Source: Macrostomum lignano (Eukaryota). From it: a stretch of DNA of 64,000 bases. The stretch is from the NCBI GenBank assembly GCA_002269645.1, contig NIVC01002153.1, positions 124,001 through 188,000 of the forward strand, read 5' to 3'. Of this stretch, positions 7,870 to 60,285 are shown piece by piece (positions within the stretch are counted from its first letter, which is position 1; the number at the start of each line of letters is the position of its first letter). The notes beneath the pieces are model-generated. The model did no database searches, had not been told where the DNA came from, and saw only the letters and a program-made list of their open reading frames with translations. Position numbers and translations under genes: made by a program.

Positions 7870-7926
7870 GCCAGACAAACAGACAGACAAACGGACAGAC
7901 AAACAGACAGACAAACAGACAGACAA

Positions 7927-7981
<55 letters not shown>

Positions 7982-10218: not shown

Positions 10219-10429
10219 GACATTCAGCTTAGTGATGTGGTAGCAAAGAATCAGATTGCTAATAGAGAACTCTCTTTAGTGTATTGTGTTATAGTGGAAA
10301 TTTTCCTATCAATTTCCTATCATTCGCCTTGGGGCTAAAGAGGGTTCCCACCGTTTGCGTCTCTCTGTCTCTCTCTCCACATGCCTACCCCTCCGCCTCT
10401 TTTCTCCCCTCTGATACGACAGAGCGGTG

Positions 10430-10600
10430 CAGTCAGCAGCGCATTTGCTAGATTCGCCACGCCACGTCCAAATGCCCTGCCAGCACATACCCCAGCCCTG
10501 GAGGTATGGCAGCGCTGCTTCAGCCTGGGAGAGATGAGCAATGCGACTCTGTCTCTGGCTGCCATGAGGCAAGCAACGATTCATGCTTTACAGTGCCACA
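10430..10600 (-). mobile_element. Possible degenerate LINE apurinic-like endonuclease fragment
   Basis: Minus-strand ARDRVALLISPRLKQRC resembles GRGGVGALIGPRLQQSC in the endonuclease of the LINE at ~23.2 kb. Confidence 0.35.
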
Positions 10601-10675
10601 TGGCAGATGAGAGTGAACTTATGGGAATGGATTTTTTGCGACTCTGGGCTCACACGAGAAAAGATACTGGACGGC

Positions 10676-11150
10676 AGACACTGAGACAGACACTGAGGCA
10701 GACACTGAGACAGACGCTGAGACAGAAACTGAGACAGACACTGAGGCAGACACTGAGACAGACACTGAGACAGACACTGAGACAGACACTGAGACAGACA
10801 CTGAGGCAGACACTGAGACAGACACTGAGACAGACACTGAGGCAGACACTGAGACAGACACTGAGACAGACACTGAGACAGACACTGAGACAGACACTGA
10901 GATAGACACTGAGACAGACACTGAGACAGACACTGAGACAGACACTGAGACAGACACTGAGACAGACACTGAGATAGACACTGAGACAGACACTGAGACA
11001 GACACTGAGACAGACACTGAGGCAGACACTGAGACAGACACTGAGACAGACACTGAGACAGACACTGAGACAGACACTGAGATAGACACTGAGACAGACA
11101 CTGAGACAGACACTAAGGCAGACACTGAGACAGACACTGAGACAGACACT
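10676..11150. repeat. Minisatellite, 12-bp unit CAGACACTGAGA
   Basis: About 39 tandem copies; gives the RQTL/SVSV ORFs. Confidence 0.95.
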
Positions 11151-11669
11151 ACAAAATTGGCGAGTGATGGTCACAGGTCACAAACAGGCAATCCACCCTA
11201 TTTGAGTTCAGTAAGCTAAGGTACGAGTTGAGGGTTGGAAAACTGATTAGAAGGGATAGAATTGTGGAGGGGGGTTGTTGGGCAGCGCAGATTGACAGCT
11301 GGAGGGAGACCTTGTCAGCAGCTATCGGTGCTCAGGTAGCAGCCAGGTACTGCATTTTTATCAGGAAGTTTGTTAAAGAAGGTGCTGTATTTTTGAACTT
11401 GTAGGTTCTTACCGCGGCTACAGAATGTTATGCAAAGCCCCTATATATGGCTCTTTTATGCAGCCCGTGCCTTCCACCCAAGTTACACTTGAACCCATTT
11501 TTTCTCTTGTCTGACTCTCCGATAGCTTTCATAGCCAGTTTTTTTTTAATCAGAGATTCTAAGCATTGCCGACAACTAGACTGACAGTCTCGCTTTGCTG
11601 GCTTTGCTTTTGCACTTTTTCTGTTGCAGTTATTGGCCAGAGAGGCTGAATCGGCTGCGCTGTGGGAGA

Positions 11670-12550
11670 GAGAGACTGGAAGGTAAGAGAGAGAATGGGA
11701 GACTGGAGGGGAAAGATGGAGGTGGTTATGGACTGGAGGAGGGTAAGAAGGAGAGGATTAGACGGAAGAGTAAGAGAGAGGGTAGACTGGAGGGTAAGAG
11801 GGGAGACTGGAAGGTAAGAGGGGAGACTGGAAGGTAAGAGGGGAGACTGGAGGGTAAGAGGGGAGACTGGAGGGTAGGAAGGGAGACTGGAGGGTAAGAG
11901 GGGAGACTGGAGGGTAACAGGGGAGACTGGAGGGTAGGAAGGGAGACTGGAGGTAAGAGGGGAGACTGGAGGGTAGGAAGGGAGACTGGAGGGTAGGAAG
12001 GGAGACTGGAGGGTAAGAGGGGAGACTGGAGGGTAGGAAGGGAGACTGGAGGGTAAGAAAAGAGACTGGAGGGTAAGAGAGAGACTGGAGGGTAAGAGGG
12101 GAGACTGGAGGGTAAGAGAGAGACTGGAGGGTAAGAAAAGAGCCTGGAGGGTAAGATGAGAGACTGGAGGGTAAGAGAGAGACTGGAGGGTAAGAGGGGA
12201 GACTGGAGGGTAAGAGAGAGACTGGAGGGTAGGATGAGAGACTGGAGGGTAAGAGAGAGACTGGAGGGTAAGAGGGGAGACTGGAGGGTAAGAGAGAGAC
12301 TGGAGGGTAAGATGAGATACTGGAGGGTAAGATGAGAGACTGGAGGGTAAGAGGGGAGACTGGAGGGTAAGAGGGGAGACTGGAGGGTAAGATGAGAGAC
12401 TGGAGGGTAAGAGGGGAGACTGGAGGGTAAGAGAGAGACTGGAGGGTAAGAAAAGAGACTGGAGGGTAAGATGAGAGACTGGAGGGTAAGAGAGAGACTG
12501 GAGGGTAAGAGGGGAGACTGGAGGGTAAGAGAGAGACTGGAGGGTAGGAG
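11670..12550. repeat. Purine-rich minisatellite, 20-bp unit GAGACTGGAGGGTAAGAGGG
   Basis: About 40 tandem copies. Confidence 0.95.
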
Positions 12551-12877
12551 GGAAGTGCGGAAGAGTTTTAACTATTTGTAGTGAGCTTAGTGAATAAACA
12601 GCTCTTATTATATATTTTCTACATTTAATTTTCTGTAACTTTTTTGTGACACTACTGGCAGTAGCACTTTAGACAAGCATATTAACTACAACCATTGATC
12701 GAAATGTCACTTCACGTTAATGTCCTCTGATTAATTACCGGTCATTAACTGTAAGACAAACGGCAATTTTAATTTAAAGGGCAAACCAGACAAACGAAGC
12801 AACAATTTATTTTTAATTTATTATGGTAAAGTCCTATCAAGTCATATTAAGCTTCATATCATTAGCTGTCTTATTTA

Positions 12878-13223
12878 TCAAACGAATTTGCATTCGGAGA
12901 AGGTGCAGTTGTTAAAGCTAAACTTCGCCGTCGCCAGATTTTCCTGATTAACGCCGGTGATTTGCATGTTTGACACCACATTGACATCCAGCTCACTGGC
13001 CCCAGAATCGCTTGGTCCTACGTGTCCGGCCTGGTCACCTTTAACTTCTTCTTTAGTTTGCAGTGCCAATGCCGACGTCACAGCATAGCTGCTCGCTTGC
13101 AGAGATCGGTCCCGACGTTTTGTAAGGTACCTGCGTGCCGTTCGTTCAGATGTCTGGCCGGTGATGGACATAATGTCGGCCATGCTATGTCCAGCGGCCT
13201 CTAGATCCGTAATCCTGGTTACC
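12878..13223 (-). CDS. Terminal exon of a Crypton/DUF3504-like tyrosine-recombinase-fold protein (upstream exons not found)
   Basis: After ttttcttag| (phase 2): VTRITDLEAAGHSMADIMSITGQTSERTARRY...FSFNNCTF*. This fits the YR C-terminal pattern (HSLR)xTxITxLxxAG...IMxxTGHxSxxxLxxY and the FxFxNC tail typical of Crypton-derived proteins. Confidence 0.55.
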
Positions 13224-13787
13224 CTAAGAAAATATGATTAATGATGATTACATTACATTACATTATTCGAGTGGCGAATTTGTTTCCAAAATACGAGTGG
13301 CGTTTCGAAGTTTGTTTCTGTAGGGTTTCAAATTAATCTGAGACGAACTTCGCAGGTCGGAAAGAAGAGATTTTAAGAATTTCGCTGTTCAAACTGTCAC
13401 AGATTAGCAATTGTTTTATAATCCGAAATTTGGCTAATCCGATTGAGCAGCAATCAGCTCAATCAGGCTAAGCATTCAGCACCCAGCGGGAAAATCCTTC
13501 CGGCCTTTAATTCTCAAATTGCCCATAATCTCGATAAAATCCTGCATATCTCGTTAAGTGCCGTAGGGATCAGGAAGGGATTAAGTAGGGAAATTTGACT
13601 ACTATGCTGTCAATTCAATTAGCTTCATCAGCGCGGCAGCTGAACGGTGGACAGTTATTAATTAGCGAAGTTCTTGCAATTAAATAAAATACAGAAATAT
13701 TCTTTTTTCGAAGAAGCCTCCTCAATAAGGTCAATGCGCTGGGACTCTGCAGGCTTCACATTTGCCTTTCTTTAGAAAAGTTCCCAA

Positions 13788-14228
13788 CTTGTGAAGCTTC
13801 GAACTTGTGAAGTTTAAAACTTGTGAAGCTTCGAATTTGTGAAGTTTAAAACTTGTGAAGCTTCGAATTTGTGAAGTTTTAAACTTGTGAAGCTTCGAAC
13901 TTGTGAAGTTTAAAACTTGTGAAGCTTCGAATTTGTGAAGTTTTAAACTTGTGAAGCTTCGAACTTGTGAAGTTTAAAACTTGTGAAGCTTCGAATTTGT
14001 GAAGTTTTAAACTTGTGAAGCTTCGAACTTGTGAAGCTTAAAACTTGTGAAGCTTCGAACTTGTGAAGTTTAAAACTTGCGAAGCTTCGAACTTGTAAAG
14101 TTTAAAACTTGCGAAGCTTCGAACTTGTAAAGTTTAAAACTTGTGAAGCTTCGAACTTGTGAAGTTTAAAACTTGTGAAGCTTCGAATTTGTGAAGTTTA
14201 AAACTTGTGAAGCTTCGAACTTGTGAAA
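13788..14228. repeat. Minisatellite, 32-bp unit CTTGTGAAGCTTCGAACTTGTGAAGTTTAAAA (dimer of 16-mers)
   Basis: About 13 tandem copies. Confidence 0.93.
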
Positions 14229-20949: not shown

Positions 20950-21168
20950 ACTGGCCCAGCAACTAAGGATCTGGGAGGCTGGCCCAGCAACTGAGGATCT
21001 GGGAGGCTGGTGAACCAGCAACTGAGGATCTGGGAGGCTGGTGAACCAGCGACTGAGGATCTGGGAGGCTGGTGAACCAGCGACTGAGGATCTGGGAGGC
21101 TGGTGAACCAGCAACTGAGGATCTGGGAGGCTGGTGAACCAGCGACTGAGGATCTGGGAGGCTGGCCC
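20950..21168. repeat. 28/31-bp minisatellite GCTGG(CC/TGAA)CCAGCAACTGAGGATCTGGGAG
   Basis: About 7 copies; the same family occurs at 25.2 kb and 53.9 kb. Confidence 0.9.
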
Positions 21169-21169: not shown

Positions 21170-21434
21170 GAAACTCCGAGTATATCTCCGAGGCTTCATA
21201 TTTCGGACACTTCATACCTCCGACACTTCATATCTCCGACACTTCATATCTCCGACACTTCATATTTCGGACACTTCATACATGCATCTCTGACACTTCA
21301 TATCTCCGACACTTCATACCTCCGACACTTCATAGCTCCGACACTTCATATCTCCGACACTTCATAGCTCCGACACTTCATATCTCCGACACTTCATAGC
21401 TCCGACACTTCATATCTCCGAGGCTTCATATTTC
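21170..21434. repeat. 16-bp minisatellite CTCCGACACTTCATAT, left half
   Basis: Continues at 23404 after the LINE insertion. Confidence 0.92.
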
Positions 21435-23403
21435 AACAACAACAACAACAGAGTACGCTGCCGGTTCGCAAAAGCGCAAAAGCAGCGTCAGATGGCGCAC
21501 TTCGAAGCTTGGGCGCGAACAAAGGCCGCACCGCCGGCAGAGTCCGGGGCGCCGGCGTCAGCCAGCAGACAGTCGACGTAGCGCCGAGTCCTCGCCTGTC
21601 CCCGCCGGTAGGGTGCCTGCAACGTAAGTATTCATAGCAGCACCTCCTTCACCGGCTCCGGACAGTAGGCCTCGGCGCGGATGACGTGGCCTGCCAGCTG
21701 GAGTCGCCGACGGCGCAGCAGATCGCTAGGACGGGCCAGGCCGGCGCGATGATAGAGCGCCGTGTTGGTGACTCGCTCGTTGCCGATCTTGAAGGCGGCG
21801 CGCAGCAGGCCAGCGTGCGCCGCGTCGACTTGAGCCTCGAGCGAGTCTGTCAGCGTCCAGGTCTCGGCGTTGTATAACAGGACGGTTTCGATCACCGCCT
21901 GGAACAGCGCCGCCCTCTGGCGGTCCGGTAAGGCCTCGGACTGCAGGACTGACCTTATAGAACGAAAGGCAGCCCAGGCAAGTCCTCGGCGACGCCGCAG
22001 ATCCTCGCGAACGTCGGGAACCAGACCGCCGAGGTAGACGAACTGCTGACATCTTGGAAGCTCACTCGCCTGTCCGTCAGCGCCTCGGCAGAAGATTGCA
22101 GCCTCGGCGTCGTCCGGCACGCATAGCACGACGGTCTTCTGCGTGTTGACCACCAGGCCGACGCTCGCCGCAACGGCAACCAGCCTATCCAGCTGTCGTT
22201 GGGCGCCCTCGACGGTCGAGGACAGCAGGGCGAGGTCATCGGCGTAGCCCCAAGCACGCTGAGCCGTCTCTCCGGTTGGCGTCGACCCACGCGTCGCCGC
22301 AGCAGGAAGCCGTCGTCGTTGGAAGGCAGAGCAGTCCGTAGCACCCAGTCAAGCACCAGAATAAATAGGAACGGCGCTAGCGTATCTCCCTGGAGCACCC
22401 CGGAGGATGTCTCGAAGAAATCCGATAGGCCGTCCGGTGTTGAGACAGCAGCCGTCGTGCCGTGGTACAGCGCCATGACAGCAGAAATCAGCAGCTCTGG
22501 CACGTTGTACGCACGGAGCACCTCTGGGAGCGCGTCCCTCAGGACCGAGTCGAAGGCCTTCCTGAAATCGACGAAGATCAGGATCAGGGTCAACTGGCGG
22601 ATGCGCGGCTCCTCGATGACTCGCCGAAGAGCCAGGATCTGCGTCACTGTGCCGCGATGGAGCCGGAATCCGTTCTGCTCAGGCCGCAGGTACGGGTCCA
22701 GCACAGGCTGTAGCCGCGATAGCAGCATGCGGTTGAACAGCTTCGCGGCGCAGGACTGTAGGCAGATGCCTCGATGCTCCTCGAGCTTGGTGGTGCCCGG
22801 CTTCTTTGGAATGGCGACGATGTGCGCCGTGGTCCATTCGTTTGGCGCCACCTCACCGGAAAGCACGCGGTTCATCACTCTGGCGACCTCAGTGGCCACG
22901 CAGTAGCGTAGCGTTCCAGCCGCGCGCGTTCCGCCGCCTCTGCTTGCAGCCCACGAAGGTCGCGAGCCTGCCCGGTGACTTGCGGAATCTGGTGTTGGCC
23001 GACACCATGTCCTGTCTCTCCAGGAAGTCCTCTAGCGCTCCGAGCGTTCAGGTCTCCGAGAATGACCTCCGTGTCACGTTGCGCCATCTCCTCCACCCGC
23101 ACCGAGAGTTGCTCGAAGAAGGCCTGAGCCTCATCGGAGCGGGTAGCAGGCGGCGCGTACGCGCAGAACAGGCGGGCGTTCTGGCCGCGAAGCCGGACGT
23201 CGACCCGAAGCAGCCGAGAAGACAGGGAGACGCAGCGACAGCTCTGCTGCAGCCTCGGTCCGATCAGCGCTCCAACTCCTCCACGGCCTCGCTCATCCGC
23301 TGAGGTGTACCAGAGTGTCCAACCGGCGCCCAGGTCCTCACAGTGAAGTCCGGGGTCGGCTCTGATAGACACCTCCTGTAGTGCGATGACATCACTGCTG
23401 ATG
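21435..23403 (-). mobile_element. 5'-truncated, internally deleted RTE-type LINE (endonuclease + RT pseudogene)
   Basis: Endonuclease motifs DVIALQEV and VILGDLNAR; RT motifs EQNGFR, FVDFRKAFDSV, GVLQGDTLAPFLF and YADDLALL (frameshifted). (TTG)n 3' tail at 21435-21450; 9-bp TSD TCATATTTC at 21426-21434 and 23404-23412. Confidence 0.93.
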
Positions 23404-23757
23404 TCATATTTCGGACACTTCATACCTCCGACACTTCATATCTCCGACACTTCATATCTCCGACACTTCATACCTCCCACACTTCATATCTACGACACTT
23501 CATATCTCCGACACTTCATATCTCCGACACTTCATATATCCGACACTTCATACCTCCCACACTTCATATCTCCCACACTTCATATCTCCGACACTTCATA
23601 TCTCCGACACTTCATATCTCCGACACTTCATACCTCCGACACTTCATATCTCCGACACTTCATATCTCCGACACTTCATATCTCCGACACTTCATATCTC
23701 CGACACTTCATAACTCCGAGGCTTCATAACTCCGACAACCTTCATAACTCCGACACT
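23404..23757. repeat. 16-bp minisatellite CTCCGACACTTCATAT, right half
   Basis: Same unit as 21170-21434. Confidence 0.92.
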
Positions 23758-24159
23758 TTATGTCTGCATGTACACTTTCCGAGTCTTGGGGGCTTGGCCT
23801 CATGAAGGGGGGGGGTGAATCCGCATGTCAAGCCCCAAGTGAATATGGCCGCATTTTATCTGTTTATCGATTCGTTTGACTTGCAGTCACCATGCGTAGT
23901 CGTTAAAGTTACTATCGCGGATCAACGGCCAACTGGAAACTCGAAAACAAAACGTGCTGATAGCTTTCAGCTGTGTTCTAATTTCTGGCAATCTCTGCTT
24001 TTCCTGTGGACTTCTTATCAACTCTTACCTTGGTGACCAAGCATAAACAGAAAATATGTTGATTTCCTCCGGTTGCATATAAATAGTTTCAACATCAAAT
24101 TAACGGATTGATCGAAAATTACACATTTTCACAACCTAAATCGGAAGAAACGAATTCCA

Positions 24160-25157: not shown

Positions 25158-25270
25158 TGGCCCCAGCAACTGAGGATCTGGGAGGCTGGCCCAGCAACTG
25201 AGGATCTGGGAGGCTGGCCCAGCAACTGAGGATCTGGGAGGCTGGCCCAGCAACTGACACTCTGGGAGAG
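25158..25270. repeat. 28-bp minisatellite GCTGGCCCAGCAACTGAGGATCTGGGAG
   Basis: About 4 copies downstream of lysozyme 2. Confidence 0.88.
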
Positions 25271-28506: not shown

Positions 28507-31500
28507 TCACTCGCCGGACCCAGCGGCGGCATTGGCTGCAGCGGCCGCGGCAGACACGGCGGTGGCAGCGGCGGCGGCCCGGCGAGCCCAGTCGCCAGCT
28601 CCTGGCGGTGGCGGCCTGCTGCTGACATAGTCGGCATCCCGCTGCACAGTCATAGTCTGGTACTTCTCCCGCTGGGCAGGCGTGGCGATGCGTTGGAAAT
28701 AGAAATCGTCAAGCAGCTGTTTGAGTTGTCGGGCCTCGCAGCTCTCCCAGGCCAGACTGCGGACCCGAACCTGCTTCCTGTCGTCGTCCTCATCCTCGGA
28801 GCTGACAAATTCGCGCTGCAGAAGCTCTTCGAGTTTGGCCGCCTCCTGAGTCTCCAAGGTGCGGGACAGGTAGCTGGCGGCTTTCTGGCGACGGCGGAGC
28901 TTCTGGTTTATCGGGGGTGAGTTGGGAGATGAGAGTGAACAGATACCTGTTGTATACTACTGACGCATGCGCTATTTAGTAATATAATATGGAAATCATC
29001 CATCCTGTTTTCAATTGCGCCCACCCTATTTCTAATCTCACCATTCTGTTTTCAATCGCACCCACCCTATCTCTAATCTCACCCCTCATGTTTTAAATCT
29101 AACCCTCTTGTTTTAAATCCCACCCATCATATATCTAATCTAATCACCTAGCCTATTTCTAATCTCACCCATTCTGTTTTTAATCTCACCCAACCTATTT
29201 CTAATCTCACCCACCATATCTCTAATCGCACCTAGCCTATTTCTAATCTCACACTCTTGTTTTAAATCTCACCCACTTTATCCGCAACCTCATCTACATA
29301 ATCTCTAATCTCACCATCCTGTTTTTAATCTCATTCAACCTATTTCTAATCTCACTCACCATATCTCTAATCGCACCTAGCCTATTTCTAATCTCACCCA
29401 CCCTATCCCTAATCTCACCTACCCTATCTCTAATCTCACCTACCCTATCTCTAATCTCACCATCCTATCTGTAGCAACACAAGCTACAAGAGTCAGCAGC
29501 AACACAAACCTTCATTCGCGAAGTGAACCGCCTAGCGCGCTCATTGCTGCCAATATCTTTCAGTCGGCGAAATATGTCTTTCATAGCGGCGAGAAAGGAG
29601 TCAGTAAGGCTCGCTTCTGCAACAAAAGGATAAAAATTAAGTATCTATTTTGTTAATTTAGCTACTAAAATAAGTTTAAAAGACGAATAAAAAGTCAAGC
29701 AACATCTCTCACCTCGTCCATCTCCATCGCAACAGCCCAGTCTGCCGATTGCGCGGCGAATAACTTTGCGAGTAATTTCCACATTCAAAGCGTGAGTGAA
29801 TGGCAGATTCAGTTTGAACAGATGCGGCCCGGTTCCTTTTAGCTCTTTGTAGCACTCGCGTAGCAGAGCCTAAACATATTTTACAATGCAAAGATAGGTA
29901 AAAACGGCCCTTTTAAGTACGCTCAAAACTTCAAAGTTCGAATCTACATGAGTTCGAATCTACATGAGTTCCAATCTATATGAGCTCGAATCTGCATGAG
30001 CTCGAATCTACATGAGCTCCAATCTGCATGAGCTCGAATCTACATGAGCTCCAATCTACATGAGTTTGAATCTATATGAGCTCGAATCTACATGAGTTCG
30101 AATCTACATGAGCTCGAATCTACATGAGCTCCAATCTACATGAGTTCGAATCTACATGAGCTCCAATCTACATGAGTTCGAATCTATATGAGTTCGAATC
30201 TACATGAGCTCGAATCTACATGAGCTCCAATCTACATGAGTTCGAATCTACATGAGCTCCAATCTACATGAGTTCGAATCTATATGAGTTCGAATCTACA
30301 TGAGTTCGAATCTATATGAGTTCGAATCTACATGAGTTCGAATCTACATGAGTTCGAATCTATATGAGTTCGAATCTACATGAGTTCGAATCTACATGAG
30401 TTCGAATCTATATGAGTTCGAATCTACATGAGTTCGAATCTACATGAGTTCGAATCTATATGAGTTCGAATCTACATGAGCTCGAATCTTCATGAGTTCG
30501 AATCTACATGAGCTCCAATCTACATGAGTTCGAATCTACATGAGCTCCAATCTACATGAACCCGAATCTACATGAGCTCGAATCTTCATCAGCATAAGAC
30601 TTCACACGTTCGAAGCCTTATTTTGTCGAAAACGTCTTACCAGAATCACATACGCTAGCTTAAAAAACTTACAACACAAATGCTTTCAAGTTCAACGCTT
30701 TAAGAAACATCGGGTCTTTCTTTATCAACTCACCCGAGACTCCGCCGGGTCCATCGGCAAGCCTGACTTGCCAGAACCGCCGCTTCCACTGCTGCCTCCG
30801 CCTCCACCGCCACCAGAAGCGACAACCTCCTCGCCAGCCACCGTCGGCATACTCAGAATCGAACCGAAGCATCTAACAGTCGAAGCACCGCTGCCCAGAT
30901 CTTCTTCGCTGTCGTCGGCTGCTCCTGCCGCTGGCAATTCGCCGACAATGGCATCTCCGGCGTCAACAACATCAGAGGGAGGCGGAGGCTGTGATGATGG
31001 AGACGACAGATCCAACTGACGCCGGGGCATGACAGTCAGCTGGATCTGACGCTGATGCTTCTTCTGACTGGTTGGTGGCTGCTGTTGCTGTTGAATCTTG
31101 ATCGGATGCTGGATATGCAGGAGCTCGTCAGCCGCCACTGCTAAGCAATTGTTAAGGCTCGAGTCTACGCCAACTGTGGATGAGTCATCTTCAACGCTAA
31201 GCTGCTCGTCATCAAGATGCTGAGCATCGGTGCTGGGCCTCTGCTGTTGCTGCTGTCGATGAGGCCGCTTTCTACAGCGTCGTTTAGCAATGGGAATGAT
31301 TGACGGCCGCGACTGAGGCGATGAGGCCACTGATGAGGCAGTAGCAGATTTGGTTGTAGCTGGCAGATTTGGAGACTGGCGCTGCTGATGAAGCTGATGA
31401 AGCTGAAGATGGTGAGATGGCAGCGGTACAGTGGAATCAGCACTGCTTGACGATGTTGTCGGAGCTGCAGCGGCTGCGGCAGCGGCGGCGGCTGCTGAGG

Positions 31501-31759
31501 CGGCAGTAGGACAGGGGCCATTGTGCATCTCGTAGAACTGGCACACTGTGTCTAGGGACGGCCGCATGGCTTCAACAGCGTGCAGGTAGACTTGGCCAAT
31601 GAGGCGCATGCAGGTGACCACGTCTTTCAGGGGCATGCGATCGATCAGCAGGGTGAGGTTGCTCAGGGTGCACTCGAACAGCGTTAGGGGCGGCAGCAGG
31701 TTGCTGGCGCCTGGGGCCAGGGAGGCCGGCAGGAGGGTCGGCAGTGCCTGGCAGGACAT
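28507..31759 (-). CDS. Paralogue A: 4-exon, 561-aa protein with C14orf93-like C-terminal domain
   Basis: Exons 31759-30734, 29869-29713, 29616-29510, 28902-28507 (phases 0,1,0; 1686 nt; all GT-AG). C-terminus ...KKLRRRQKA...EFVSSEDED...VRVRSLAWES...LLD...SSRPPP...W recalls the human C14orf93 motifs (KKLRSRR...ELMSDEED...WVARPPRFR...LD...PSDRLP), compared from memory. Confidence 0.82.
29030..29465. repeat. Degenerate ~22-bp intronic repeat TTTCTAATCTCACCCACCCTAT
   Basis: Imperfect tandem copies in intron 3 of paralogue A. Confidence 0.75.
29935..30590. repeat. Minisatellite, 16-bp unit GAGTTCGAATCTACAT
   Basis: About 40 copies in intron 1 of paralogue A. Confidence 0.95.
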
Positions 31760-43000: not shown

Positions 43001-46000
43001 ACTGGGAGAAAGAGGATGGAGACTGGGAGAAAGAGGATGGAGACTGGGAGAAAGAGGATGGAGACTGGGAGAAAGAGGATGGAGACCGGGAGAAAGAGGA
43101 TGGAGACTGGGAGAAAGAGGATGGAGACTGGGAGAAAGAGGATGGAGACTGGGAGAAAGAGGATGGAGACTGGGAGAAAGAGGATGGAGACTGGGAGAAA
43201 GAGGATGGAGACCGGGAGAAAGAGGATGGAGACTGGGAGAATGAGAGGATGGAGACTGGGAGAAAGAGGATGGAGACTGGGAGAAAGAGGATGGAGACCG
43301 GGAGAAAGAGGATGGAGACTGGGAGAAAAAGGATGGAGACTGGGAGAAAGAGGATGGAGACTGGGAGAAAGAGGATGGAGACCGGGAGAAAGAGGATGGA
43401 GACTGGGAGAATGAGAGGATGGAGACTGGGAGAAAGAGGATGGAGACTGGGAGAAAGAGGATGGAGACCGGGAGAAAGAGGATGGAGACTGGGAGAAAAA
43501 GGATGGAGACTGGGAGAAAGAGGATGGAGACCGGGAGAAAGAGGATGGAGACCGGTAGAAAGAGGATGGAGACTGGGAGAAGCAGAGGGAGAAGACTTGA
43601 AAAAGCAAGAAAATAAATACTGGAAAAGGAGGAAGACTGGGAGTCTGGTAGCCGCGAATAAAGAAGAATTGGGATATTGTAGAAATAGAGAAAGATAGAG
43701 TAGGCACAGAGACAGATGGAGCAGAAAGAGGGATACATACAGTAGACAGAGTGGTAGATGTAGTAGGCAGAGAGATAGATTGAGTAGACAGAGGGATAGA
43801 TGGAGTAGAAAGAGAGATATATTAAGTAGACAAAGAGATAGATGGAGTAGTCGGAGAAATAGATAGAATAGACAAAAGCACAGCACAAGGCAGGACACAC
43901 AAAAAACTGACACTATTTCAATATGATTTAATAATCAAACACTGAAGTACAAAACATTAGTTAGAAGATAAAAAATTCTTCAACATTTTCTTCAACAAAG
44001 CTGAATACCATTTCAGAATATCACCGTGACATTGGTTTCCCCAATTGTGACTCCGTGCGAGGGGTCCACCAGACCCCATCCCAGCCAATAGGAATCCAGC
44101 TAGGGGGCAATCTGTATACCGCACCCCTCCCAGCCAATAGGAATCCAGCTAGGAGCAATCTGTATACCGGACCCATCCCAGCCAATGACAGCCAGACTGT
44201 AAACTTTATATAATCGAGACAACTTTTTCCATCTCAGTCGATCAATCAATCAGCAGTAGAAGCAGTTCTACTAGAAGATCGAGGAAGCCAGCTATACGGA
44301 GGTAAGTCTTACTTCTATCTTAAGACTATTATGGCGCTTTCTAGTCCAACGTGTCTCATTATTAGTGCCCGTTGTACTAAAGAGTGGTCCATAACAAAGC
44401 TTATTAATCGACTGCTTTATTTTATTATTTTCATTACATATAAATAAGGCGCTTTATTAGAACTGCTTCAACTTTCTTTACATTGTACACGCACTGATTT
44501 TATTAGGTGTGTACAAGGTAAGAGTTGGAATAGTCGCCTTGATTCGACGTTTTCAAGATTCTGAATAATCAGTATTAGTGATACAGTCAGTTTGGCTAAC
44601 CATGGTTGCACAAACAAGAGATTTTAAAGCTTGGTGTACATGGGAAGCCTACTGTCTGGTCACTATGAGCAGCACAGTAAATCCTAATCCCTATACTAAG
44701 CGGACAATACTATCGCAGGGTCCTTCTCTGAGTACACGTGAAGGCAAAAGTCATGTGTACAGAGTAAGCGCCCTACGTTATTATCCGTTAAGCACCTAGT
44801 AACCCCTCATCAAAGGCTGGATTAACATTGTGGCGCTTTATAGTCCAACGTGTCAGCTATCAGTGACCGTTTGACTACGAAGCGGTCACAATATCATTCC
44901 TTAATCGACTGGATCAGCTTGTAATTATTGCAATAGAAATTATAACTCTGTGGCGCTTTATAGTCCAACGTGTCTGCTATATGATAAGTGACCGTTGTAC
45001 TACAGAGTGGTCACAGAGTGGTTTCTAAACCAACTGCCCTACCCACCCAAGTTTAAATATGAGCCAAATATGGCGCTTTATAGTCCAACGTGTCTGCTAT
45101 ATGATAAAAGTGACCGTTGTACTATAGAGTGGGCTATATTGCCGGCTTGTTGATCAGCGATACTGGACCTTAACCCTTATTCATTATATTCAGTACATTG
45201 CGCATCATCCATACCGCTTAACATCCAAACTGCTACATCATCTATACCAGTCATTATTTATGATCTATATCATCATCATCAATACCAGCAATCATTTATA
45301 CCAGTTATATACCAGTACTGCTAGTCATCATCCATACTGGTCATCATCCATACTGGTCATTATCCATACTGGTCATTATCCAAAGTACTGCTAGTCATCA
45401 TCCATACTGCTCATCATCTATACTGCTCATTATCCAAAGTACTGCTAGTCATCATCCATACTGCTCATTATCCTAAGTACTGCTAGTCATCATCCATACT
45501 GGTCATCATCCATACTGCTCATTATCCAAAGTACTGCTAGTCATCATCCATACTGCTCATTATCCTAAGTACTGCTAGTCATCATCTATACTGCTCATCA
45601 TCCATACTGCTCATTATCCTAAGTACTGCTAGTCATCATCCATACTGCTCATTATCCTAAGTACTGCTAGTCATCATCCATACTGGTCATCATCCATACT
45701 GCTCATTATCCAAAGTACTGCTAGTCATCATCCATACTGCTCATTATCCTAAGTACTGCTAGTCATCATCTATACTGCTCATCATCCATACTGCTCATTA
45801 TCCTAAGTACTGCTAGTCATCATCTATACTGCTCATTATCCATACTGCTCATTATCCTAAGTACTGCTAGTCATTATCCATACTGCTCAGTATCCAAAGT
45901 ACTGCTAGTCATCATCCATATTGCTCATTATCTTAAGAACTGCTAGTCATCCATACTGCTCATCATCCATACTGTTCATCATCCATACTGCTCATTATCC

Positions 46001-49000
46001 TAAGTACTGCTAGTCATTATCCATACTGCTCAGTATCCAAAGTACTGCTAGTCATCATCCATATTGCTCATTATCCATACTGCTCATTATCTTAAGAACT
46101 GCTAGTCATCATCCATACTGCTCATTATCCATACTGCTCATTATCCTAAGTACTGCTAGTCATTATCCATACTGCTAGTCATCATCTATAATCATACTGC
46201 TCATTATTTATACTGCTTAGATCCAACATAAGCCTCAGACTATCCAAAATTTACCGTAATCCTACTAATGATTTGCGAAGTAAAACGAACAGTCTCGCGT
46301 TGTTTGTGCGAAAATTTCAAATTCATCGAATAATATCGACGAAAATAATCGTGACACCGCTCTAGAAAACGTCAACAAAGTACGTTAACTTCTAATGAAA
46401 GTAGTAAAAAAGCGTTAAAAATAACAAGGGAGGTTGCACGGGCTCAGATGCTTACAACAAGGGTGTGCCTAGCGCTGGCTATGTAGCTATTTAAGGTGGT
46501 CACTCGCTCCTCTTCTAAGAATTTCCTTCGCATGTTTTTGTACACAACAGTGCGCAAATAGAAATTGTTAGCTTCTGTAAGTGAAATTGAGATTTTCATG
46601 ACTGTTTATTATAAATAATAGTATAAAACCACAGGGTCTCTCATTGACATAGATACACATTTTCTAGAAATTATTATGTACACATGCGACATTATGGACT
46701 GCCATAACTATCATATGGATGGAAGTCTATGTTCCTACCACTGATACTAAACTACGAGTAACTAGATAAGACACCCAGGCATCGTAGTGATTTAGTAAAA
46801 CAGCTTTCTACTTTCAGTAGCAAATAAGAATACATAAGCTATTTTATAAAAATAAAGGCAGCTGAAGTGACTTTGACAAGTTTGCAGCTTGCTAATTGGA
46901 TCAGCAATAATGTACTTTGGCCAGTCCACTTGAAATGTACATAGCAGCTGTAGGCTGGAATTCCGATAATAAAAATTAGGGCGGGGCGGGGTGGTAGTGG
47001 AAAGGCGCGGTTGGAGGGTAAGGGCAAATAAATGATGGCCTTTTAAAATTCATAAAAATGCGTCTAAGCTACTACTACTACTGAACTGAAAGTAGCTTAC
47101 AAGCAAATCAGCCCATTTGTATTCTAGTTATTCTAGTATCTGTGGTTTCTACTGAGAGAGGGGCATCTTTCTTTGTGCGGATGTCTATGGTCGAATTTTC
47201 AACTTGTCTATGGGCAAGAATGTCTGTCTATGTCATAGAACTTAGAGAATTGAAATAGGGAACAGCAGTCTATGGTCTAAAGCCAAAGCTATCTAACAAG
47301 CAGCATTATTTCATCTCACACTGAAAGTGGCCACGCGTGTATTCAATAACGAATGTAGCTTCCGTTCTCTGGCCAAAGCTGAATGAGATTGTTTCAATGA
47401 TTTGAAGAAATTGTACTGAAAATATCGCTTAGATGAGTCTGTAATGTGTCAATTTTTCGTAACGTAATAAATAGCTATTTAATTTACAATTTACTAGGAG
47501 TCAAAACGTTTCTTAGAAAACTTAGAATTAAGGCCTGAATAGAACACTGCAGGTTTTTTTTTACTTTTTTCGGATATTTTTTCGACACTACTTATAGTAA
47601 AATGTTATAGCAAACTCCCATTCCCAAGAAAACTTTAAAAAGTGTAATTAGCAGTAAATTAAGAGTTGACTTGCGTACTGAATAAGTGTTGATAAGTTTA
47701 TTGGATTTCAATCGATTAGCTTCCAACGAATAGGACTTCCTTAGCGTGTCTCTATAGTAAGTGCCGGTGTACTTTTGAATGGCGACTGTAAGCAAAAGTG
47801 CATAACAATGTATAAATATTTTGTTAAAGTACTTTAGGCGCCCACGATTATTAAAATACTGAAGAGGATGCTGCAGGTCTAAATAAATCCCTTAGATTAA
47901 TCTCAACTCCCCATTGATAATAAAAGATAAAATTTTTAATTACAAATATTTTCTGCATATTTGAGCTGAGATTTTTGTTTAACTGCGTTGTACGAAATTT
48001 GCACTTCAAATTGTGATCAAAGTGATAGCGCATGTACTTCAGTGCCGGCTCTAAAAAGGTATATAAATTAAAAAAAATTGCACACTGTCTAATGATCAAA
48101 TGATTGAAATTTCTTGAACAAAGACTGTTGCAGAGATTAGTAATATTGAATGAATTTAATTACAAAAATTTGATGCATTTTCAAATCCCTATAGTAGACA
48201 GTCAGGTATTTGAAACCAGCTTCTAAAATAAAAATAAATTTTCATAAATCTATTTCATATCCTAGTGAACTGTGTAGTTATTATTCAATCAAATTACAGT
48301 CTGCTCAAGGACGGAGCGTGGTGCTTTCATGAACGATTTCTACAAACAGCAACTTATACTTACCAACGACTGTCTCAGCTGCCTCATCACCGAGGCCCCA
48401 GCATCAATAGTCTTCTGCCGATATTTCAAATAAGTACTGTAGTAGTTTCTCAAATATTTCGATGCTAAGTCTATAAAGCATTGTTTTCATTATGTTAGAA
48501 TCAATTATCTTAGAACACAGCTCAACACAACAGCTCAATTGCCAAAGATTTTAGCAGCAACAAGTAGAAACAATGATTAACTTACAAAAACAGAGTAGAA
48601 TCGGTTTTTAGCCCTGCTTCGATTGTAATCCGATTTTAAGAAACCGTAATACCAACTATTCAGGTATTTGATACCTAGGCCTGATCGATTATTAATAGAC
48701 TGTGTACATTATATAAGAATAAGGATTTTTTAAAAAATGGGAAAAGCCATTTCAGGGCCAAATATTCTCTAGTTTATTGACCACAAGCAAGAATTTCTCA
48801 AGTATTACGCTTGTAAAGTTTAATTAGTTAATTAATGCATAGTTGCGACAATAACGTGAGCAATTTTGACCATTCAATCCTGGTCATGTTTAACAGTCCC
48901 AGCACAAACACTACACTATATAGTCTGAAACAAATAAAAAACTTTCTAACTTTCCCAAACTCTGTCTCAATGAGAGAGCCCTGCAACGTCCTTTCACAAT

Positions 49001-50496
49001 TGAGGCGCAAAAACTTTAAATAATAATAATCGGAATTTTATGTTAAATATGCTACTGGTTTGCTTCATAAGTAGAATTAAACGAATATTGCAACAATATT
49101 TAAAAAGGAGCAGAACTTACTGGTCCAAGCGGCAATGTTAGTGGGCTTGTAGCTGGTGATTTGCAAAGCTTTGTCAATTACTTTCTTGGCGGCCTCCATG
49201 TTAACGGGGGCGGAGTAGGGCAGGGAGAAGTCGAATACGTTTGAACCGGTTTCGTCTTTGAGCTGGCGGTAGGCTTTACGGAGTATGCCCTGGGATTAGT
49301 AGGATATTGGAATGGTAGGATTGTTTGATTTTTAGATGCTTATTATGCTTTTGGACGAATACGAACGTACTTTACATCGAGGTGTGAAAGTTACAAAGTG
49401 TGACAGGCCCATAGCAACCGAGGATCTGTGAGTGTGACAGGTCCATAGCAACCGAGGATCTGTGAGTGTGACAGGCCCATAGCAACCGAAGATGGGTGTG
49501 ACAGGCCCATAGCAACCGAGGATCTGTGAGTGTGATAGGCCCATAGCAACCGAGGATCTGTGAGTGTGACAGGCCCATAGCAACCGAGGATCTGTGAGTG
49601 TGACAGGCTCATAGCAACCGAGGATCTGTGAGTGTGACAGACCCATAGCAACCGAGGATCTGTGAGTGTGACAGACCCATAGCAACCGAGGATCTGTGAG
49701 TGTGACAGACCCATAGCAACCGAGGATCTGTGAGTGTGACAGACCCATAGCAACGGAGGATCTGTGAGTGTGACAGGCCCATAGCAACGGAGGATCTGTG
49801 AGTGTGACAGGCCCATAGCAACGGAGGATCTGTGAGTGTGACAGGCCCATAGCAACCGAGGATCTGTGAGTGTGACAGGCCCATAGCAACCGCCAGATAG
49901 CCCCCTACCTTCCACTCAGCGGACAGTTCGCCAGTATCGCTAAGGTCTCCACCGCTAGTTCTGGCAATCTTTGCCGGGCTACCAGCCGACGCACCGAAGG
50001 CGGCGCCGCTGCCGCCCGGAGCGCCGACAATGTCAAAACTGCCGAACATGCTGCCGCTAGCGTCGTCGTCCAGAATCTGACAATCGTCATCAGAGTTGTA
50101 CTCTCGTTTTAATGAGCCAGCCGACATAAAGTCGGCGACAGCGCCGCTGCTTGACGGCTGCTGCTGCATCTTCATAGCCGAGTTGCCGATTTGCGATCCA
50201 GATGATCCAATATTCGCCGTCGGCGGAGGCGGAGGCGGCGGACATCTGGCGTGAGCATCGGCCGTGTCGGCAATCCTGACAAATTGCGGTTCCATAGCTT
50301 CGACTAGATGAGAATTCAATTGGGTGACGATTTTGAAAGCGACCATCAGATCTCTAGCAGCCATGCTGTCAATCAGCATAGTGGCATTAGTGATGGTGCA
50401 CTCGAACAGTGTCAAAGGCGAGAATGCGCCTCCGCCGCCGGCGCCACCGCCGGCACCCATCTGCTGCGGGGTCATCATAGCAATGCTGGCCGCCAT
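34065..50496 (-). CDS. Paralogue B: 4-exon, 401-aa protein with C14orf93-like C-terminal domain
   Basis: Exons 50496-49909, 49289-49121, 46574-46456, 34394-34065 (phases 0,1,0; 1206 nt). GILRKAYRQLK...FDFSLPY...N aligns with ALLRECYKELK...FKLNLPF...N of A; last exon KLNRRQKA...DFTSSDEE...RVKQLPWES...LD...SSRPPP...W. Intron 3 is ~12 kb. Confidence 0.82.
34445..34722. repeat. Minisatellite, 33-bp unit TCATCCTGAAGTGACCCTGAAGCTTATTAATAC
   Basis: About 8 copies in intron 3 of paralogue B. Confidence 0.9.
34925..35787. repeat. Minisatellite, 32/36-bp unit GAGACAGAAGACTGAAAGCAACTCAGAGATGG
   Basis: About 25 copies. Confidence 0.95.
36310..39035. repeat. Minisatellite, 21-bp unit GACAGACTGAGACACATGAAT (variants GGAAT/GTAAT)
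   Basis: About 2.7 kb; source of the ~900-aa spurious ORFs. Confidence 0.97.
39560..40400. repeat. CT-rich satellite (TCTCCTCTCTTATC variants)
   Basis: Polypyrimidine tandem array. Confidence 0.93.
41170..43580. repeat. Minisatellite, 21-bp unit GAGGATGGAGACTGGGAGAAA
   Basis: About 2.4 kb; source of the METGRKR/SPSLHPL spurious ORFs. Confidence 0.97.
44085..44301 (+). promoter_or_regulatory. Pol II promoter and non-coding first exon of a nested antisense transcript
   Basis: CAGCCAAT boxes at 44085, 44134 and 44182 (48-49 nt spacing); TATATAA at 44207; TCAGTC Inr with A at 44236 (29 nt after TATA); ATG-free 66-nt exon ending G|GTAAGT at 44301/44302. Confidence 0.72.
44329..44394 (+). ncRNA. 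Candidate pre-miRNA hairpin, family copy 1
   Basis: 5' arm TGGCGCTTTCTAGTCCAACGTGTC pairs with GTGCCCGTTGTACTAAAGAGTGG; basal TTATGG/CCATAA; CGAC (CNNC) at 44409. Confidence 0.7.
44629..44701 (+). ncRNA. Possible unrelated hairpin in the cluster
   Basis: GCTTGGTGTA/TATACTAAGC, GGGA/TCCC, TACTGT/ACAGTA and CTG/CAG helices, but with a sizeable internal loop. Confidence 0.35.
44707..44784 (+). ncRNA. Candidate pre-miRNA hairpin, unrelated family
   Basis: GTACACGTGA/TCATGTGTAC 10-bp helix, CTTCTCT/AGAGTAAG, AGGGT/GCCCT and basal ATACTATCG/CGTTATTAT; 9-nt loop. Confidence 0.55.
44827..44892 (+). ncRNA. Candidate pre-miRNA hairpin, family copy 2
   Basis: Same 5' arm; divergent 3' arm GTGACCGTTTGACTACGAAGCGG still pairs; basal ATTGTGG/TCACAAT; CGAC at 44906. 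Confidence 0.72.
44945..45019 (+). ncRNA. Candidate pre-miRNA hairpin, family copy 3
   Basis: Same 5' arm; basal ACTCTGTGGC/GTCACAGAGT 10 bp; CAAC at 45031. Confidence 0.72.
45061..45148 (+). ncRNA. Candidate pre-miRNA hairpin, family copy 4
   Basis: Same 5' arm; basal AATATGGC/GCTATATT and GAGCC/GGCTT; CAGC at 45155. Confidence 0.72.
45280..46200. repeat. Composite minisatellite, ~38-bp unit TACTGCTAGTCATCATCCATACTGCTCATTATCCTAAG
   Basis: Tandem copies with shorter sub-units. Confidence 0.92.
49400..49892. repeat. Minisatellite, 34-bp unit GTGTGACAGGCCCATAGCAACCGAGGATCTGTGA
   Basis: About 14 copies filling intron 1 of paralogue B. Confidence 0.95.
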
Positions 50497-53632: not shown

Positions 53633-55516
53633 TTAGTTATTACTTCGAACAGACAGATAAATCACCAACCCGATGACAAGTAGTACAATTAGAACTATGA
53701 TAGCCAATATGATCTTCTTGCGTCTAGCTGATCGCTTGTAACTAACAGCTTTGCCCAGCTGTTTGTTGCCGGTTTCTACGTGCATGACAGCCTCGCTGAC
53801 GTGGTCCTCGATGCTGTCCAGCATCTCGCCTTGGTCGTGCACCATGTGGGCCAGGTCCTTGAATAGCTCGTTGATGCCTGTAAGGGAGAATTGAGATAGG
53901 GATGAAATGACAAGCTGCTGTGACGACAAGGGGATCTGGGAGGCTGGCCCAGCAACTGGGGATCTGGGAGGCTGGCCCAGCAACTGGGGATCTGGGAGGC
54001 TGGCCCAAAAACTGAGGATCTGGGAGGCTGGACCAGCAACTGGGAATCTGAGAGGCTGGCCCAGCAACTGACACTCTGGGCGGCTGGCCCAGCAACTGAG
54101 GTCTGGGAGGCTGGCCCAGCAACTGAGGATCTCAGAGGCTGGCCCAGCAACTGAGGATCTCAGAGACTGGCCCAGCAACTGAGGATCTCAGAGGCTGGCC
54201 CAGCAATTGAGGATCTCAGAGGCTGGCCCAGCAATTGAGGATCTCAGAGGCTGGCCCAGCAACTGAGGATCTCAGAGGCTGGCCCAGCAACTAAGGATCT
54301 GGGAGACTGAGGATTTGGGAAACAAGCACAATACCGGAACGCACCAACAATATCCTGCTCCAGCTGATGCAGCTGCTGTTCCCGCTGCTCAGCAGCCTGG
54401 AGATCCAGCTGCTGTTGCTGCTGCTGCTGCTGGCCGCCCAGTCTGAACGGGCTGTCTGCATCAACAAGCTGAGCAGGTTGCTGCTGTTGCTGATCAAACA
54501 GGGAGTCCAGCCCACTCCCGCCAGCTTCGCGCCGCTGTTTAGCTGCGGCCTCCTTCTCTCGGGCCTGGACGAGGCGCTGCACCTCTTGAAAATCGCCAGC
54601 CACTTTGGTTACCTGGTTAAAGAAAACGAATTGAGCCTGATGAATTACCGAGGGAAGTGTCCAATCTCAACAATTTTAAAATAGCTATAATTTTTTAATC
54701 CAATTCTACTTGAATTAATCTTGCCAAAATTTAAATTTAAATATCGAATTAAATCTATCTCACTCGATCTAATTTAACCAATCTTGATCTATTCTCGCCC
54801 GATCTAAAATAATCACTCTGGATCTAATCTCATTAGATTTAAACCGATAAATCTTAATCTAATCTCCATCGATCTAAACTTATCAACCTTGATCTAATCT
54901 CACGCCATCTAATCTAACCAATATTGATCTAATCTCACTGAATCTAAACCGAACGATCTTGATCTAATCTTACTCAATCTAAACCAATTAATCTTTATCT
55001 AATCTTACTCAATCTAAACCAATAAATCTTGATCTAATCTCACTCAATCTAAACCAATAAATCTTGATCTAATCTCACTCAATCTAAACCAATAAATCTT
55101 GATCTAATCTCACTGAATCTAAACCAATCAATCTTCATCTAATCTCACTAAATCTAAACAAATAAATATTGATGTAATCTCTCAATCTAAACCAATCGAT
55201 ATAAATCACATAGTAAAAGATGCAGTACACTCCGCACCTGATCCACCAAGCGATCCTTCTGCACTCGCCGCATAGCCGCAGCCATGCCCTGACACATTGG
55301 AGTCAAATCTCTCTTCAACTGTTCAGTAGCCCGCTGGCATTGAGACAATGTTGTATGCGTCAGCGAGTGAATCTGAGAACGCAATGCTTCGGAATCTCGG
55401 TCCGTACCAATTTTATTAGACAAATTGCGTATCTGGCCAGTGTTAGTCTGTACGCCAGTTACTAGTTGACTAATCTCGGCGGCCAGATTAGCAAAACGCT
55501 CATCGTCTGTAGACAT
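53633..55516 (-). CDS. Syntaxin-7/12-like endosomal Qa-SNARE, 3 exons, 263 aa
   Basis: Exons 55516-55238, 54612-54345, 53877-53633 (phases 0,1; 792 nt). Habc-like N-terminus (IGTDRDSEALR), SNARE motif [31 protein letters not shown], C-terminal TM anchor. Confidence 0.93.
53930..54310. repeat. 28-bp minisatellite GCTGGCCCAGCAACTGAGGATCT(GG/CA)GAG in syntaxin intron 2
   Basis: About 13 copies; same family as 20.95 kb and 25.2 kb. Confidence 0.93.
54740..55200. repeat. 35-bp minisatellite AATCTAAACCAATAAATCTTGATCTAATCTCACTC in syntaxin intron 1
   Basis: About 12 copies, degenerate toward the left. Confidence 0.88.
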
Positions 55517-58609: not shown

Positions 58610-59960
58610 TGATTTGAATTTGTTGAAGGCCATAGGGGCTCAAGGCTTCTCCTAATAGACCAGAATGCATACAGGTGCAAAAGAACATTGAACAAGAAGT
58701 ACTATTTTACATGTCGTAATGAAGACTGCTTCGCCAAAGTTATGCTAAGTGGTGAGACTGCCACACACAGTGGGACTCATAAAGATGGTCCAATCCCTGA
58801 TGAAGAAATTGGAAAGATGAAGTTAAAGCGACGACTAAATGAAGCTGAGACAAAACAGCCAGAAAAGTGCCTATGAGTAGTTTTTGACAAAATAACAAAT
58901 GATAAAGCAGCTAGGCCAGATGTTGGATTTCCAGAAATGGAGCTCCGCATGTGGCGAGCAAGATGAGCTGTACAGCCTCGAATCCCAACATCTGTTGATG
59001 AGGCTGTCGAACTTCTGCATGACGTGGACATGCATTTGCAAAACTGCGGAGTAGATAGCAAGAAAGTTTTCCAGAAAAGCAGTCAAGTTGACCAGCATGC
59101 TGCTGTTTTTTTTGCTCACCCTGAACTCCTGGCTGAGCTTCAAAATGCAAACAACATTTTTGTTGATGGCACATTCCGAGTTGTGCCTTGCCTGTTTTTT
59201 CAATTAGTGACCATTGGAATCATTAAACAAGGTTTCTTTTTTCCTTGCTTTTTTGTGCTACTTACTGGCAAGACAAAGGCCCTCTACCATTTAGTGTGGT
59301 CGAAGGTAAAGCAGCTGTTTCCTGCCTTTGAGCCACTGAGTGTCATGATGGATTACAAAATTGCACTGCGAGATTCTCTGCTGGAAGCGTTTCCAACATC
59401 AACCGCTCATGGATGTTGGTTTTACAAGCTGTCCTCACGAAGCTAAAAAAGCTTGGACTATGGAGTGAAGTGTGCCGCAACACTAATGTTTGCAGCTATG
59501 TGAGACTGCATTTGTGCTTGCCTCTGCTTCCTGCGCAACACCTTGCTGCACTTCATGCTGTCCTGCAACCTGAGACATTTGTTACAACACTTGCCAATGA
59601 CAAGATGGAAGCACTGCATCGAGCCTACATGTACATCCGGACCTATTGGCTAGAGAGGGTTGGTGCAGCCATCCTCTCTGTGCACAACTGCAAAGACAGG
59701 ACCAATAATAAGCAGGAATCCTACCATAGTCATTGGAGGACCTTTGTAGAGACCACTCATCCCAATATGTGAGATTTCATTGTAGTGCTTTATTCCTCAA
59801 CGAAAAGAAGCAGTTGTTCAACCTATGCAGCTGACCTAAATAGGCTAAAATGTGGTGTTCCAATCCACCGAGTGCGAGGAAAGTGCAGTGTACTAAAAAG
59901 TATCCGCATTCGGCAGCAGTATGACCTATTAAGCAGTGGACGGGTAACTGCTCTGGAGGT
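58610..59960 (+). pseudogene. MULE transposase pseudogene with N-terminal FLYWCH/WRKY-like zinc finger
   Basis: GHRGSRLLLIDQNAY...KYYFTCRNEDCFAKV...HSGTH; catalytic-region motifs FVDGTFRVVP..FFQLVTI, FP.FFVLLTGK, VMMDYKIA and HGCWFY, then TNNKQESYH. Several in-frame stops and frameshifts. Confidence 0.88.
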
Positions 59961-60029
59961 TCTACGCAATTTGAGTGTATCAGCTGGTCTCCCTCTAGAC
60001 AACCCACATGATGCTGCTGAACTAGCTGT

Positions 60030-60285
60030 AGGTCAGTTGCCAGATGTTGCCCAGCCGGCCCTTGGCAACGCCGGCAGGCAGCCGCAAGTCATCGCCCAGC
60101 CAGCCCTTGGCAGCTCCAGCGGGCAGCTGCAAGTCATTGCCTAGCCGGCCCTTGGTGGTGCTAGTGGGCAGCCGCAAGACATCACCTAGCTGGCCATTGG
60201 TGGCACTGGTGGGCAGCTGCAAGACGTCACCCAGCCGGCCATTGGCGGCACTGGTGGGCAGCCGCAAGATGCCGCCCAGCATTTC
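60030..60285. repeat. Degenerate ~45-51-bp repeats in the 3' part of the MULE ORF
   Basis: CCCAGCCGGCCCTTGGC...GGGCAGCCGCAAG repeated about 5 times (QPALG...QPQVIA). Confidence 0.7.

Follow-up and report, generated by a model that had tools for sequence, protein, structure and literature searches.

We analysed a 64,000-nucleotide (nt) window of the genome of the flatworm Macrostomum lignano (assembly GCA_002269645.1, contig NIVC01002153.1, positions 124,001 to 188,000 of the forward strand; coordinates below are those of the window), in which an initial annotation had picked out four paralogous hairpins as a candidate microRNA (miRNA) cluster. Those four hairpins are real, but the count was incomplete: three more, A, B and C, had been overlooked. 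They lie on the plus strand between copies 1 and 2 and are unrelated in sequence to the first group, and the array comprises seven hairpins in total (44321-45150), with a period of ~120 nt. We refer to the four repeat copies (hairpins 1, 5, 6 and 7) as family I and to hairpins 2, 3 and 4 (A, B and C) as family II. The array and the motifs that precede it are listed below; 5p and 3p are predicted mature arms, and each CNNC offset is counted from the predicted 3' cut.

44075..44186 (+): candidate upstream promoter region, a tandem repeat of a 48-base-pair (bp) unit (2.3 copies) with CCAAT boxes at 44085, 44134 and 44182 within it
44207..44213 (+): TATA box (TATATAA); the A of the initiator-like TCAGTC follows 29 nt downstream
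44234..44239 (+): initiator-like TCAGTC, with a motif-inferred start at ~44236
44236..44307 (+): putative short first exon at 44236-44301 with, at its end, a candidate 5' splice site of the AG/GTAAGT type (GGTAAGT, 44301-44307)
44321..44403 (+): hairpin 1, family I copy 1; predicted 5p 44332-44353 (UGGCGCUUUCUAGUCCAACGUG) and 3p 44370-44393; CNNC (CGAC) at 44409, +16
44445..44541 (+): hairpin 2 (A), family II; -37.3 kcal/mol, z -5.5; predicted 3p 44508-44529 (UGUGUACAAGGUAAGAGUUGGA); CNNC (CGAC) at 44545, +16
44576..44665 (+): hairpin 3 (B), family II; -36.9 kcal/mol, z -4.2; predicted 3p 44632-44653 (UGGUGUACAUGGGAAGCCUACU); CNNC (CAGC) at 44670, +17
44696..44792 (+): hairpin 4 (C), family II; -36.7 kcal/mol, z -3.4; predicted 3p 44754-44775 (UGUGUACAGAGUAAGCGCCCUA); CNNC (CACC) at 44793, +18
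44813..44902 (+): hairpin 5, family I copy 2; predicted 5p 44831-44852 (UGGCGCUUUAUAGUCCAACGUG) and 3p 44868-44890; CNNC (CGAC) at 44906, +16
44934..45027 (+): hairpin 6, family I copy 3; predicted 5p 44951-44972 and 3p 44993-45015; CNNC (CAAC) at 45031, +16
45059..45150 (+): hairpin 7, family I copy 4; predicted 5p 45071-45092 and 3p 45115-45138; CNNC (CAGC) at 45155, +17

Family I is built around a 24-nt block, TGGCGCTTTMTAGTCCAACGTGTC, that occurs four times in the window as exact plus-strand matches (44332, 44831, 44951 and 45071). No extra match appeared anywhere in the 64 kilobases (kb), even with up to 3 mismatches, and 100 dinucleotide shuffles put the number expected by chance at 0. 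Copies 2, 3 and 4 (44831, 44951 and 45071) are spaced exactly 120 nt apart, so both the repeated arm and its phasing are as the initial annotation described them. Folded as plus-strand RNA, copies 1-4 each formed a single long hairpin (-22.2, -34.5, -37.8 and -36.6 kcal/mol) with z scores against shuffles of -3.2, -6.5, -5.8 and -5.0, and the divergent 3' arm of copy 2 was still paired in the predicted fold, again as first proposed. The surrounding minisatellites, with which these copies had been contrasted from the start, have periods of 4-50 bp and a uniform identity of 80-96%.

Across both families, all seven plus-strand hairpins were more stable than their dinucleotide shuffles (z -3.2 to -6.5). 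Each has a stem of about 30-35 positions plus a basal extension, in line with the roughly three helical turns (~35 bp) of canonical animal miRNA precursors, and each predicted duplex, for which 2-nt offsets were assumed, contains 19-20 paired positions against a criterion of at least 16. Family II is united by the heptamer GUGUACA, common to the 3' arms of A, B and C at the same position relative to the loop; as DNA, GTGTACA occurs 8 times on the plus strand of the 64 kb, and three of these occurrences (44509, 44634 and 44755) are the ones in these arms. Pairwise identity among the three arms is 13-15 of 22 positions.

A, B and C went unmatched when a covariance model was built from the four copies of family I, and MAFFT gave no convincing alignment of the three with family I. 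The base of hairpin A nonetheless carries GGCGCUUUAU, which is common to family I. At this base, GGCGCTTTAT (44448-44457) is identical to the ten bases that follow the initial T in the family I block, and the TTGATTCGAC tail 3' of hairpin A (44539-44548) resembles, by eye, the TTAATCGAC that follows copies 1 and 2. Despite the failed overall alignment, this shared base and tail suggest that all seven units descended from one ~120-nt ancestor.

Conservation was measured within family I, between paralogues only, by averaging the identity over all pairs of its four copies. Identity was 0.98 in the 5' arm, 0.83 in the 3' arm and 0.53 in the loop. It fell to 0.45 and 0.40 in the 10 nt below the arms, compared with 0.40 for random 10-mers, and stood at 0.47 and 0.54 in the next 40 nt out, compared with 0.48 for random 40-mers. 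The divergence of loops and spacers around an invariant arm, which the initial annotation had pointed out, is thus borne out. Flanks at random identity imply that the duplications are old enough for the flanks to have been randomised; with those flanks saturated with change and one 24-nt arm frozen, the pattern is one of selection, not decay.

The lower stems tell a similar story. They had been described as differing in sequence yet staying paired, and the quoted pairs are indeed present; in the family I alignment, three lower-stem pairs carry changes on both sides (UA/AU/CG, AU/GC and AU/UA). The covariation score was 0.224 versus 0.142 in shuffles, a value reached in 2 of 500 shuffles. When the conserved core was kept and the 20-nt flanks were shuffled, the real flanks gave the more stable fold in all 4 copies (P = 0.024, 0.016, <0.001 and 0.009). 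Because only four sequences contribute, we regard this compensatory evidence as supportive rather than decisive.

Strand polarity can be read from the same stems. G:U pairs occupy four stem positions in family I, in three copies each, and point to the plus strand, since read from the minus strand each would become a C·A mismatch. The original strand argument stood, but fold stability favours the plus strand in only some hairpins: copies 3 and 4, A and B all fold much better on the plus strand than on the minus strand, and copy 1 about equally well on the two.

For the processing geometry, we placed the family I Drosha cut directly before the invariant U with which the block begins; the resulting 3' cuts lie after 44393, 44890, 45015 and 45138. 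For family II we assumed a 22-nt 3p arm that begins at the U before GUGUACA (A and C) or before GGUGUACA (B). With these cuts, a CNNC lies at +16, +16, +17, +18, +16, +16 and +17 in hairpins 1-7. Canonically, CNNC sits 16-18 nt from the cut (optimum near 17) and the apical UGU at a distance of ~22 nt (PMC6004053); in family I, GUG/UGU occupies 5p positions 20-23. The chance of a CNNC in a given 3-nt window of this region is 0.14 per hairpin, and 7 of 7 would have a probability of ~1e-6 if the hairpins were independent, which they are not fully, since four are paralogous and the family II cuts were picked post hoc.

The family I tetramers at 44409, 44906, 45031 and 45155 are those recorded in the initial annotation, but their offsets are 16, 16, 16 and 17 nt rather than the 19-21 nt given there, because the guide start had been guessed 3 nt further in. 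Canonical CNNC spacing argues for a start at the U. We therefore kept the invariant 5' arm as the likely guide and moved its start: the family I guide more likely begins at the invariant U and would read UGGCGCUUUAUAGUCCAACGUG, with seed GGCGCUU. The predicted U starts also fit the 5'-U bias of the abundant 22-nt small RNAs of M. lignano, in which Drosha, DGCR8, Dicer and Exportin-5 are present (PMC4604429).

Upstream of the hairpins, a fourth CCAAT box lies at 44041, outside the 48-bp repeat. The CCAAT-TATA-TCAGTY composite occurs once in the window, both strands included, compared with 0.025 occurrences expected from block shuffles, and it stands ~85 nt from the first hairpin on the same strand. 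The splice-donor-like AG/GTAAGT (44301/44302) is 20 nt before hairpin 1; if this putative donor is used, the hairpins would be intronic, and a non-coding host transcript may carry them in its first intron. No plus-strand open reading frame (ORF) of at least 70 amino acids (aa) occurs between the cluster and the next gene (the minus-strand ORF 49609-50496), and the first AATAAA signals 3' of the cluster are at 46851-47027. A dedicated non-coding host transcript would be the simplest reading of these motifs.

In aggregate, the folds, the conservation gradient, the compensatory stems, the G:U bias, the CNNC motifs at the predicted cuts, the spacing and the promoter motifs support the interpretation as an miRNA cluster that the initial annotation had advanced. 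We estimate a probability of roughly 75% that the array is a polycistronic, lineage-specific canonical miRNA cluster of M. lignano, with seven hairpins, two seed families and its own promoter. From the observed sequences, folds, conservation, compensatory stems and motif positions we infer how its transcription, cleavage sites and arm choice, and with them targets and biology, might look. With the CCAAT boxes and the TATA box upstream, RNA polymerase II would start at ~44236 and transcribe the plus strand across all seven hairpins (44321-45150, spaced ~120 nt). The Microprocessor (Drosha/DGCR8) would cut about one helical turn above the base of each hairpin, with help from the CNNC located 16-18 nt beyond the 3' cut and, for family I, from the apical GUG/UGU; Dicer would then remove the loop. 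Hairpins 1, 5, 6 and 7 would load the invariant 5' arm, about UGGCGCUUUAUAGUCCAACGUG with seed GGCGCUU, and would represent four gene copies of one guide. Hairpins 2, 3 and 4 would load the 3' arm, UGUGUACA.../(U)GGUGUACA..., with a seed of about GUGUACA.

Several observations weigh against a canonical miRNA cluster. Copy 1 is a weak hairpin (-22.2 kcal/mol, z -3.2), the plus strand of copy 2 folds slightly worse than its minus strand, and hairpin C is more stable on the minus strand (-41.8 versus -36.7 kcal/mol). Raw folding energy is unexceptional here, with GC-rich and minisatellite regions equal or better; in so repeat-rich and locally GC-rich a window, it is no discriminator. All conservation evidence comes from paralogues within one array, and four non-independent paralogues are a small sample that leaves the covariation and CNNC statistics rough. 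For family II, the U start and the 22-nt length that define the cut sites were picked post hoc, with the sequences already seen. We found no basal UG at -14/-13 at the predicted hairpins. In addition, the Microprocessor motifs were defined in vertebrates (PMC6004053), and CNNC recognition is not established for flatworms.

Whether the element recurs elsewhere bears on what it is. The four-copy covariance model found no other family I member in the window or in a 25-kb related locus (89 kb together); on that scale it is no dispersed repeat. A metagenome scan with a 21-mer gave 0 matches, exact look-up of six window ORFs (four inside the cluster) returned no record, and a HMMER search with the ORF translated across hairpins B and C recovered only irrelevant repetitive proteins. 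The window itself has a close relative in the assembly. Positions 1-14000 have a collinear, 98%-identical copy in NIVC01000068.1:121377-146722 (GCA_002269645.1), with single-nucleotide polymorphisms and small indels, and a DHHC palmitoyltransferase fragment (exon 3268-3864) is 98% identical to BOX15_Mlig030347g1 of M. lignano. This copy is in keeping with the duplicated blocks of a neopolyploid genome, in which 180 megabases of the assembly lie in duplicated blocks that are at least 95% identical (PMC5730564). The compared stretch of NIVC01000068.1 (~25 kb) stops ~30 kb short of the cluster counterpart, which should lie ~40 kb downstream of BOX15_Mlig030347g1 on that contig, near 175-180 kb.

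Rfam 15 at gathering thresholds returned no family anywhere in the window, in line with the initial annotation, which did not recognise the arm as a known family. The best sub-threshold matches in the cluster region (E ≤ 10) were to MIR814, at 18-26 bits (top 25.7) versus 90, and to mir-460, at 20.7 versus 52, and these scores reflect generic hairpin shape. MIR814 (RF04299), which is the best Rfam similarity for copies 2-4, is a long hairpin of similar length and nearly perfect pairing; it is, however, a plant family, some matches fall on the wrong strand, and the likeness amounts to hairpin shape and a few bases in common. Resemblances to miR-219 (GUCCAAACG core), miR-1992 (GUUGUACCAC) and miR-2001 (GUGACCGUU) were dropped, with a different seed and no match to the Rfam model in each case. 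Small nucleolar RNAs (snoRNAs) of the H/ACA or C/D type gave only sub-threshold Rfam noise, and a transfer RNA search found none.

Neither the arm sequences nor their first 9-10 nt matched an miRNA in exact-string comparison with the full text of 8 million papers, which takes in neither miRBase and MirGeneDB themselves nor supplementary tables at large. Zhou et al. (2015) reported miRNAs from this species, made by the pathway proposed here, and restricted their list to reads with 100% identity to miRBase entries; their supplementary files lack the present arms (PMC4604429). The M. lignano genome paper leaves miRNAs unmentioned, and the GenBank annotation omits non-coding transcripts (PMC5730564). 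With no Rfam family and no match in the literature or the supplement, the cluster appears undescribed.

One rival is that the array is a decaying ~120-bp tandem repeat, or an element resembling a miniature inverted-repeat transposable element (MITE) with an internal palindrome, whose hairpins are by-products that yield no functional small RNA. The sole Rfam similarity would suit such an origin, MIR814 being a transposon-derived family, although these matches are weak (E 0.05-4) and far below the gathering score. The units do stand in tandem with a period of ~120 nt, roughly half of the window is minisatellite, many other places in it fold as stably, and 15% of the M. lignano genome consists of simple or tandem repeats (PMC5730564). 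Neutral decay, however, would be uniform along the unit, whereas here one arm is held at 98% beside flanks at random level, and the lower stems stay paired despite unrelated sequences. The G:U pairs place the constraint on RNA rather than DNA, the covariance model finds no further copy in the 89 kb, and the neighbouring minisatellites are unlike the array in period and in the uniformity of their identity. We consider a decaying repeat very unlikely. An element acting as DNA, in which four 24-bp protein-binding sites form an enhancer or insulator array within palindromes, would account for four exact 24-bp copies next to a promoter, three of them exactly 120 bp apart. It leaves unexplained the compensatory lower stems, the partly conserved complementary arm with its G:U strand asymmetry, and the presence, at the same period, of three unrelated hairpins among the copies, and we judge it highly improbable.

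A further alternative acts at the RNA level. The hairpins could belong to a structured RNA other than an miRNA: they could destabilise a host transcript through cleavage by Drosha, give rise as short hairpins to endogenous small interfering RNAs (siRNAs), or serve a non-coding RNA as stem-loops that bind protein. In its favour, the conservation is one of structure and strand, a 22-nt product is only predicted, and the hairpins are perhaps intronic if the GTAAGT site is used. Set against it, the invariance is limited to one 22-24-nt arm, as expected of a guide strand and not of a structural element, and family II has a common 7-mer at the seed position of its 3' arm. Stem length and, with the predicted cuts, the positions of CNNC and the apical GUG/UGU suit Microprocessor substrates. 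The stems are too short for a hairpin-siRNA locus, and an H/ACA snoRNA would show large internal pockets and box motifs, which the hairpins lack; the snoRNA models of Rfam all stayed below threshold. A structured RNA of this kind is, in our assessment, unlikely.

Elsewhere in the window, a syntaxin-7/12-like gene lies 8.5 kb downstream of the cluster on the minus strand (53633-55516). We reconstructed it by hand as a 263-aa protein with Syntaxin_2 and SNARE domains, encoded by exons 55516-55238, 54612-54345 and 53877-53633, the last intron being filled with minisatellite. This intronic array (53932-54309) is one of three places, together with 20956-21165 and 25162-25268, that carry a 28-31-bp minisatellite (CCAGCAACTGAGGATCTGGGAGGCTGG), which looks like a dispersed minisatellite family. 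Two minus-strand ORFs (30725-31759 and 49609-50496) are paralogous, with an N-terminal block of 48 residues shared at 46% identity (E 2e-13). Neither Pfam nor the record collection searched gave a match to them, and their tails are of low complexity or run into minisatellite.

The window also holds traces of mobile elements. A minus-strand retroelement of the type lacking long terminal repeats (non-LTR) comprises an endonuclease-like ORF (22875-23423) and a reverse transcriptase (21632-22899) closest to M. lignano entries. The same 16-bp minisatellite lies on both of its sides (21182-21431 and 23404-23758); the element either inserted into a 16-bp array or carries the repeat at both ends. The remnant of a Mutator-like element (MULE)-type DNA transposase (PF10551, E 2.5e-07) is split over several consecutive plus-strand ORFs at 59024-60144, and an interstitial degenerate telomere-like repeat at 8771-9107 mixes CCCTAA-like and CCTAA-like units.

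Lineage-specific miRNA clusters are common, and young, tandemly duplicated ones are to be expected in poorly annotated invertebrate genomes. The array looks like known tandem paralogue clusters: mir-35-41 of C. elegans, mir-430 of zebrafish, mir-2/mir-71 of Drosophila and flatworms, and mir-17~92 of mammals. Like these, it has several hairpins ~100-130 nt apart on one strand, under what would be one promoter; its tandem duplicates hold the guide arm or seed, whereas the star arm, loop and spacers drift; and it would combine more than one seed family per transcript, with CNNC motifs downstream of the hairpins. In sequence and in seed, however, the M. lignano array matches none of these clusters.

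By analogy with mir-35, mir-430 and mir-290/302, multicopy clusters of early embryos or stem cells in other animals, the array might form a Macrostomum-specific, tandemly amplified miRNA 'operon' that delivers, from its own non-coding host gene, a four-fold dose of one guide together with a three-member second seed family and acts in neoblasts or the germline of this regenerating worm. We offer this as a tentative and rather unlikely extension of the cluster interpretation; were it true, it would raise the question of whether the near-constant 120-nt phasing matters for cluster-assisted processing by the Microprocessor. The understanding of miRNA biogenesis is unchanged by the cluster. M. lignano is a transgenic, regeneration-competent flatworm model, and if the cluster interpretation is true, two new seed families and a compact promoter would provide lineage-specific regulators testable by RNA interference, reporters and sensors, and would help to date miRNA gain within flatworms.

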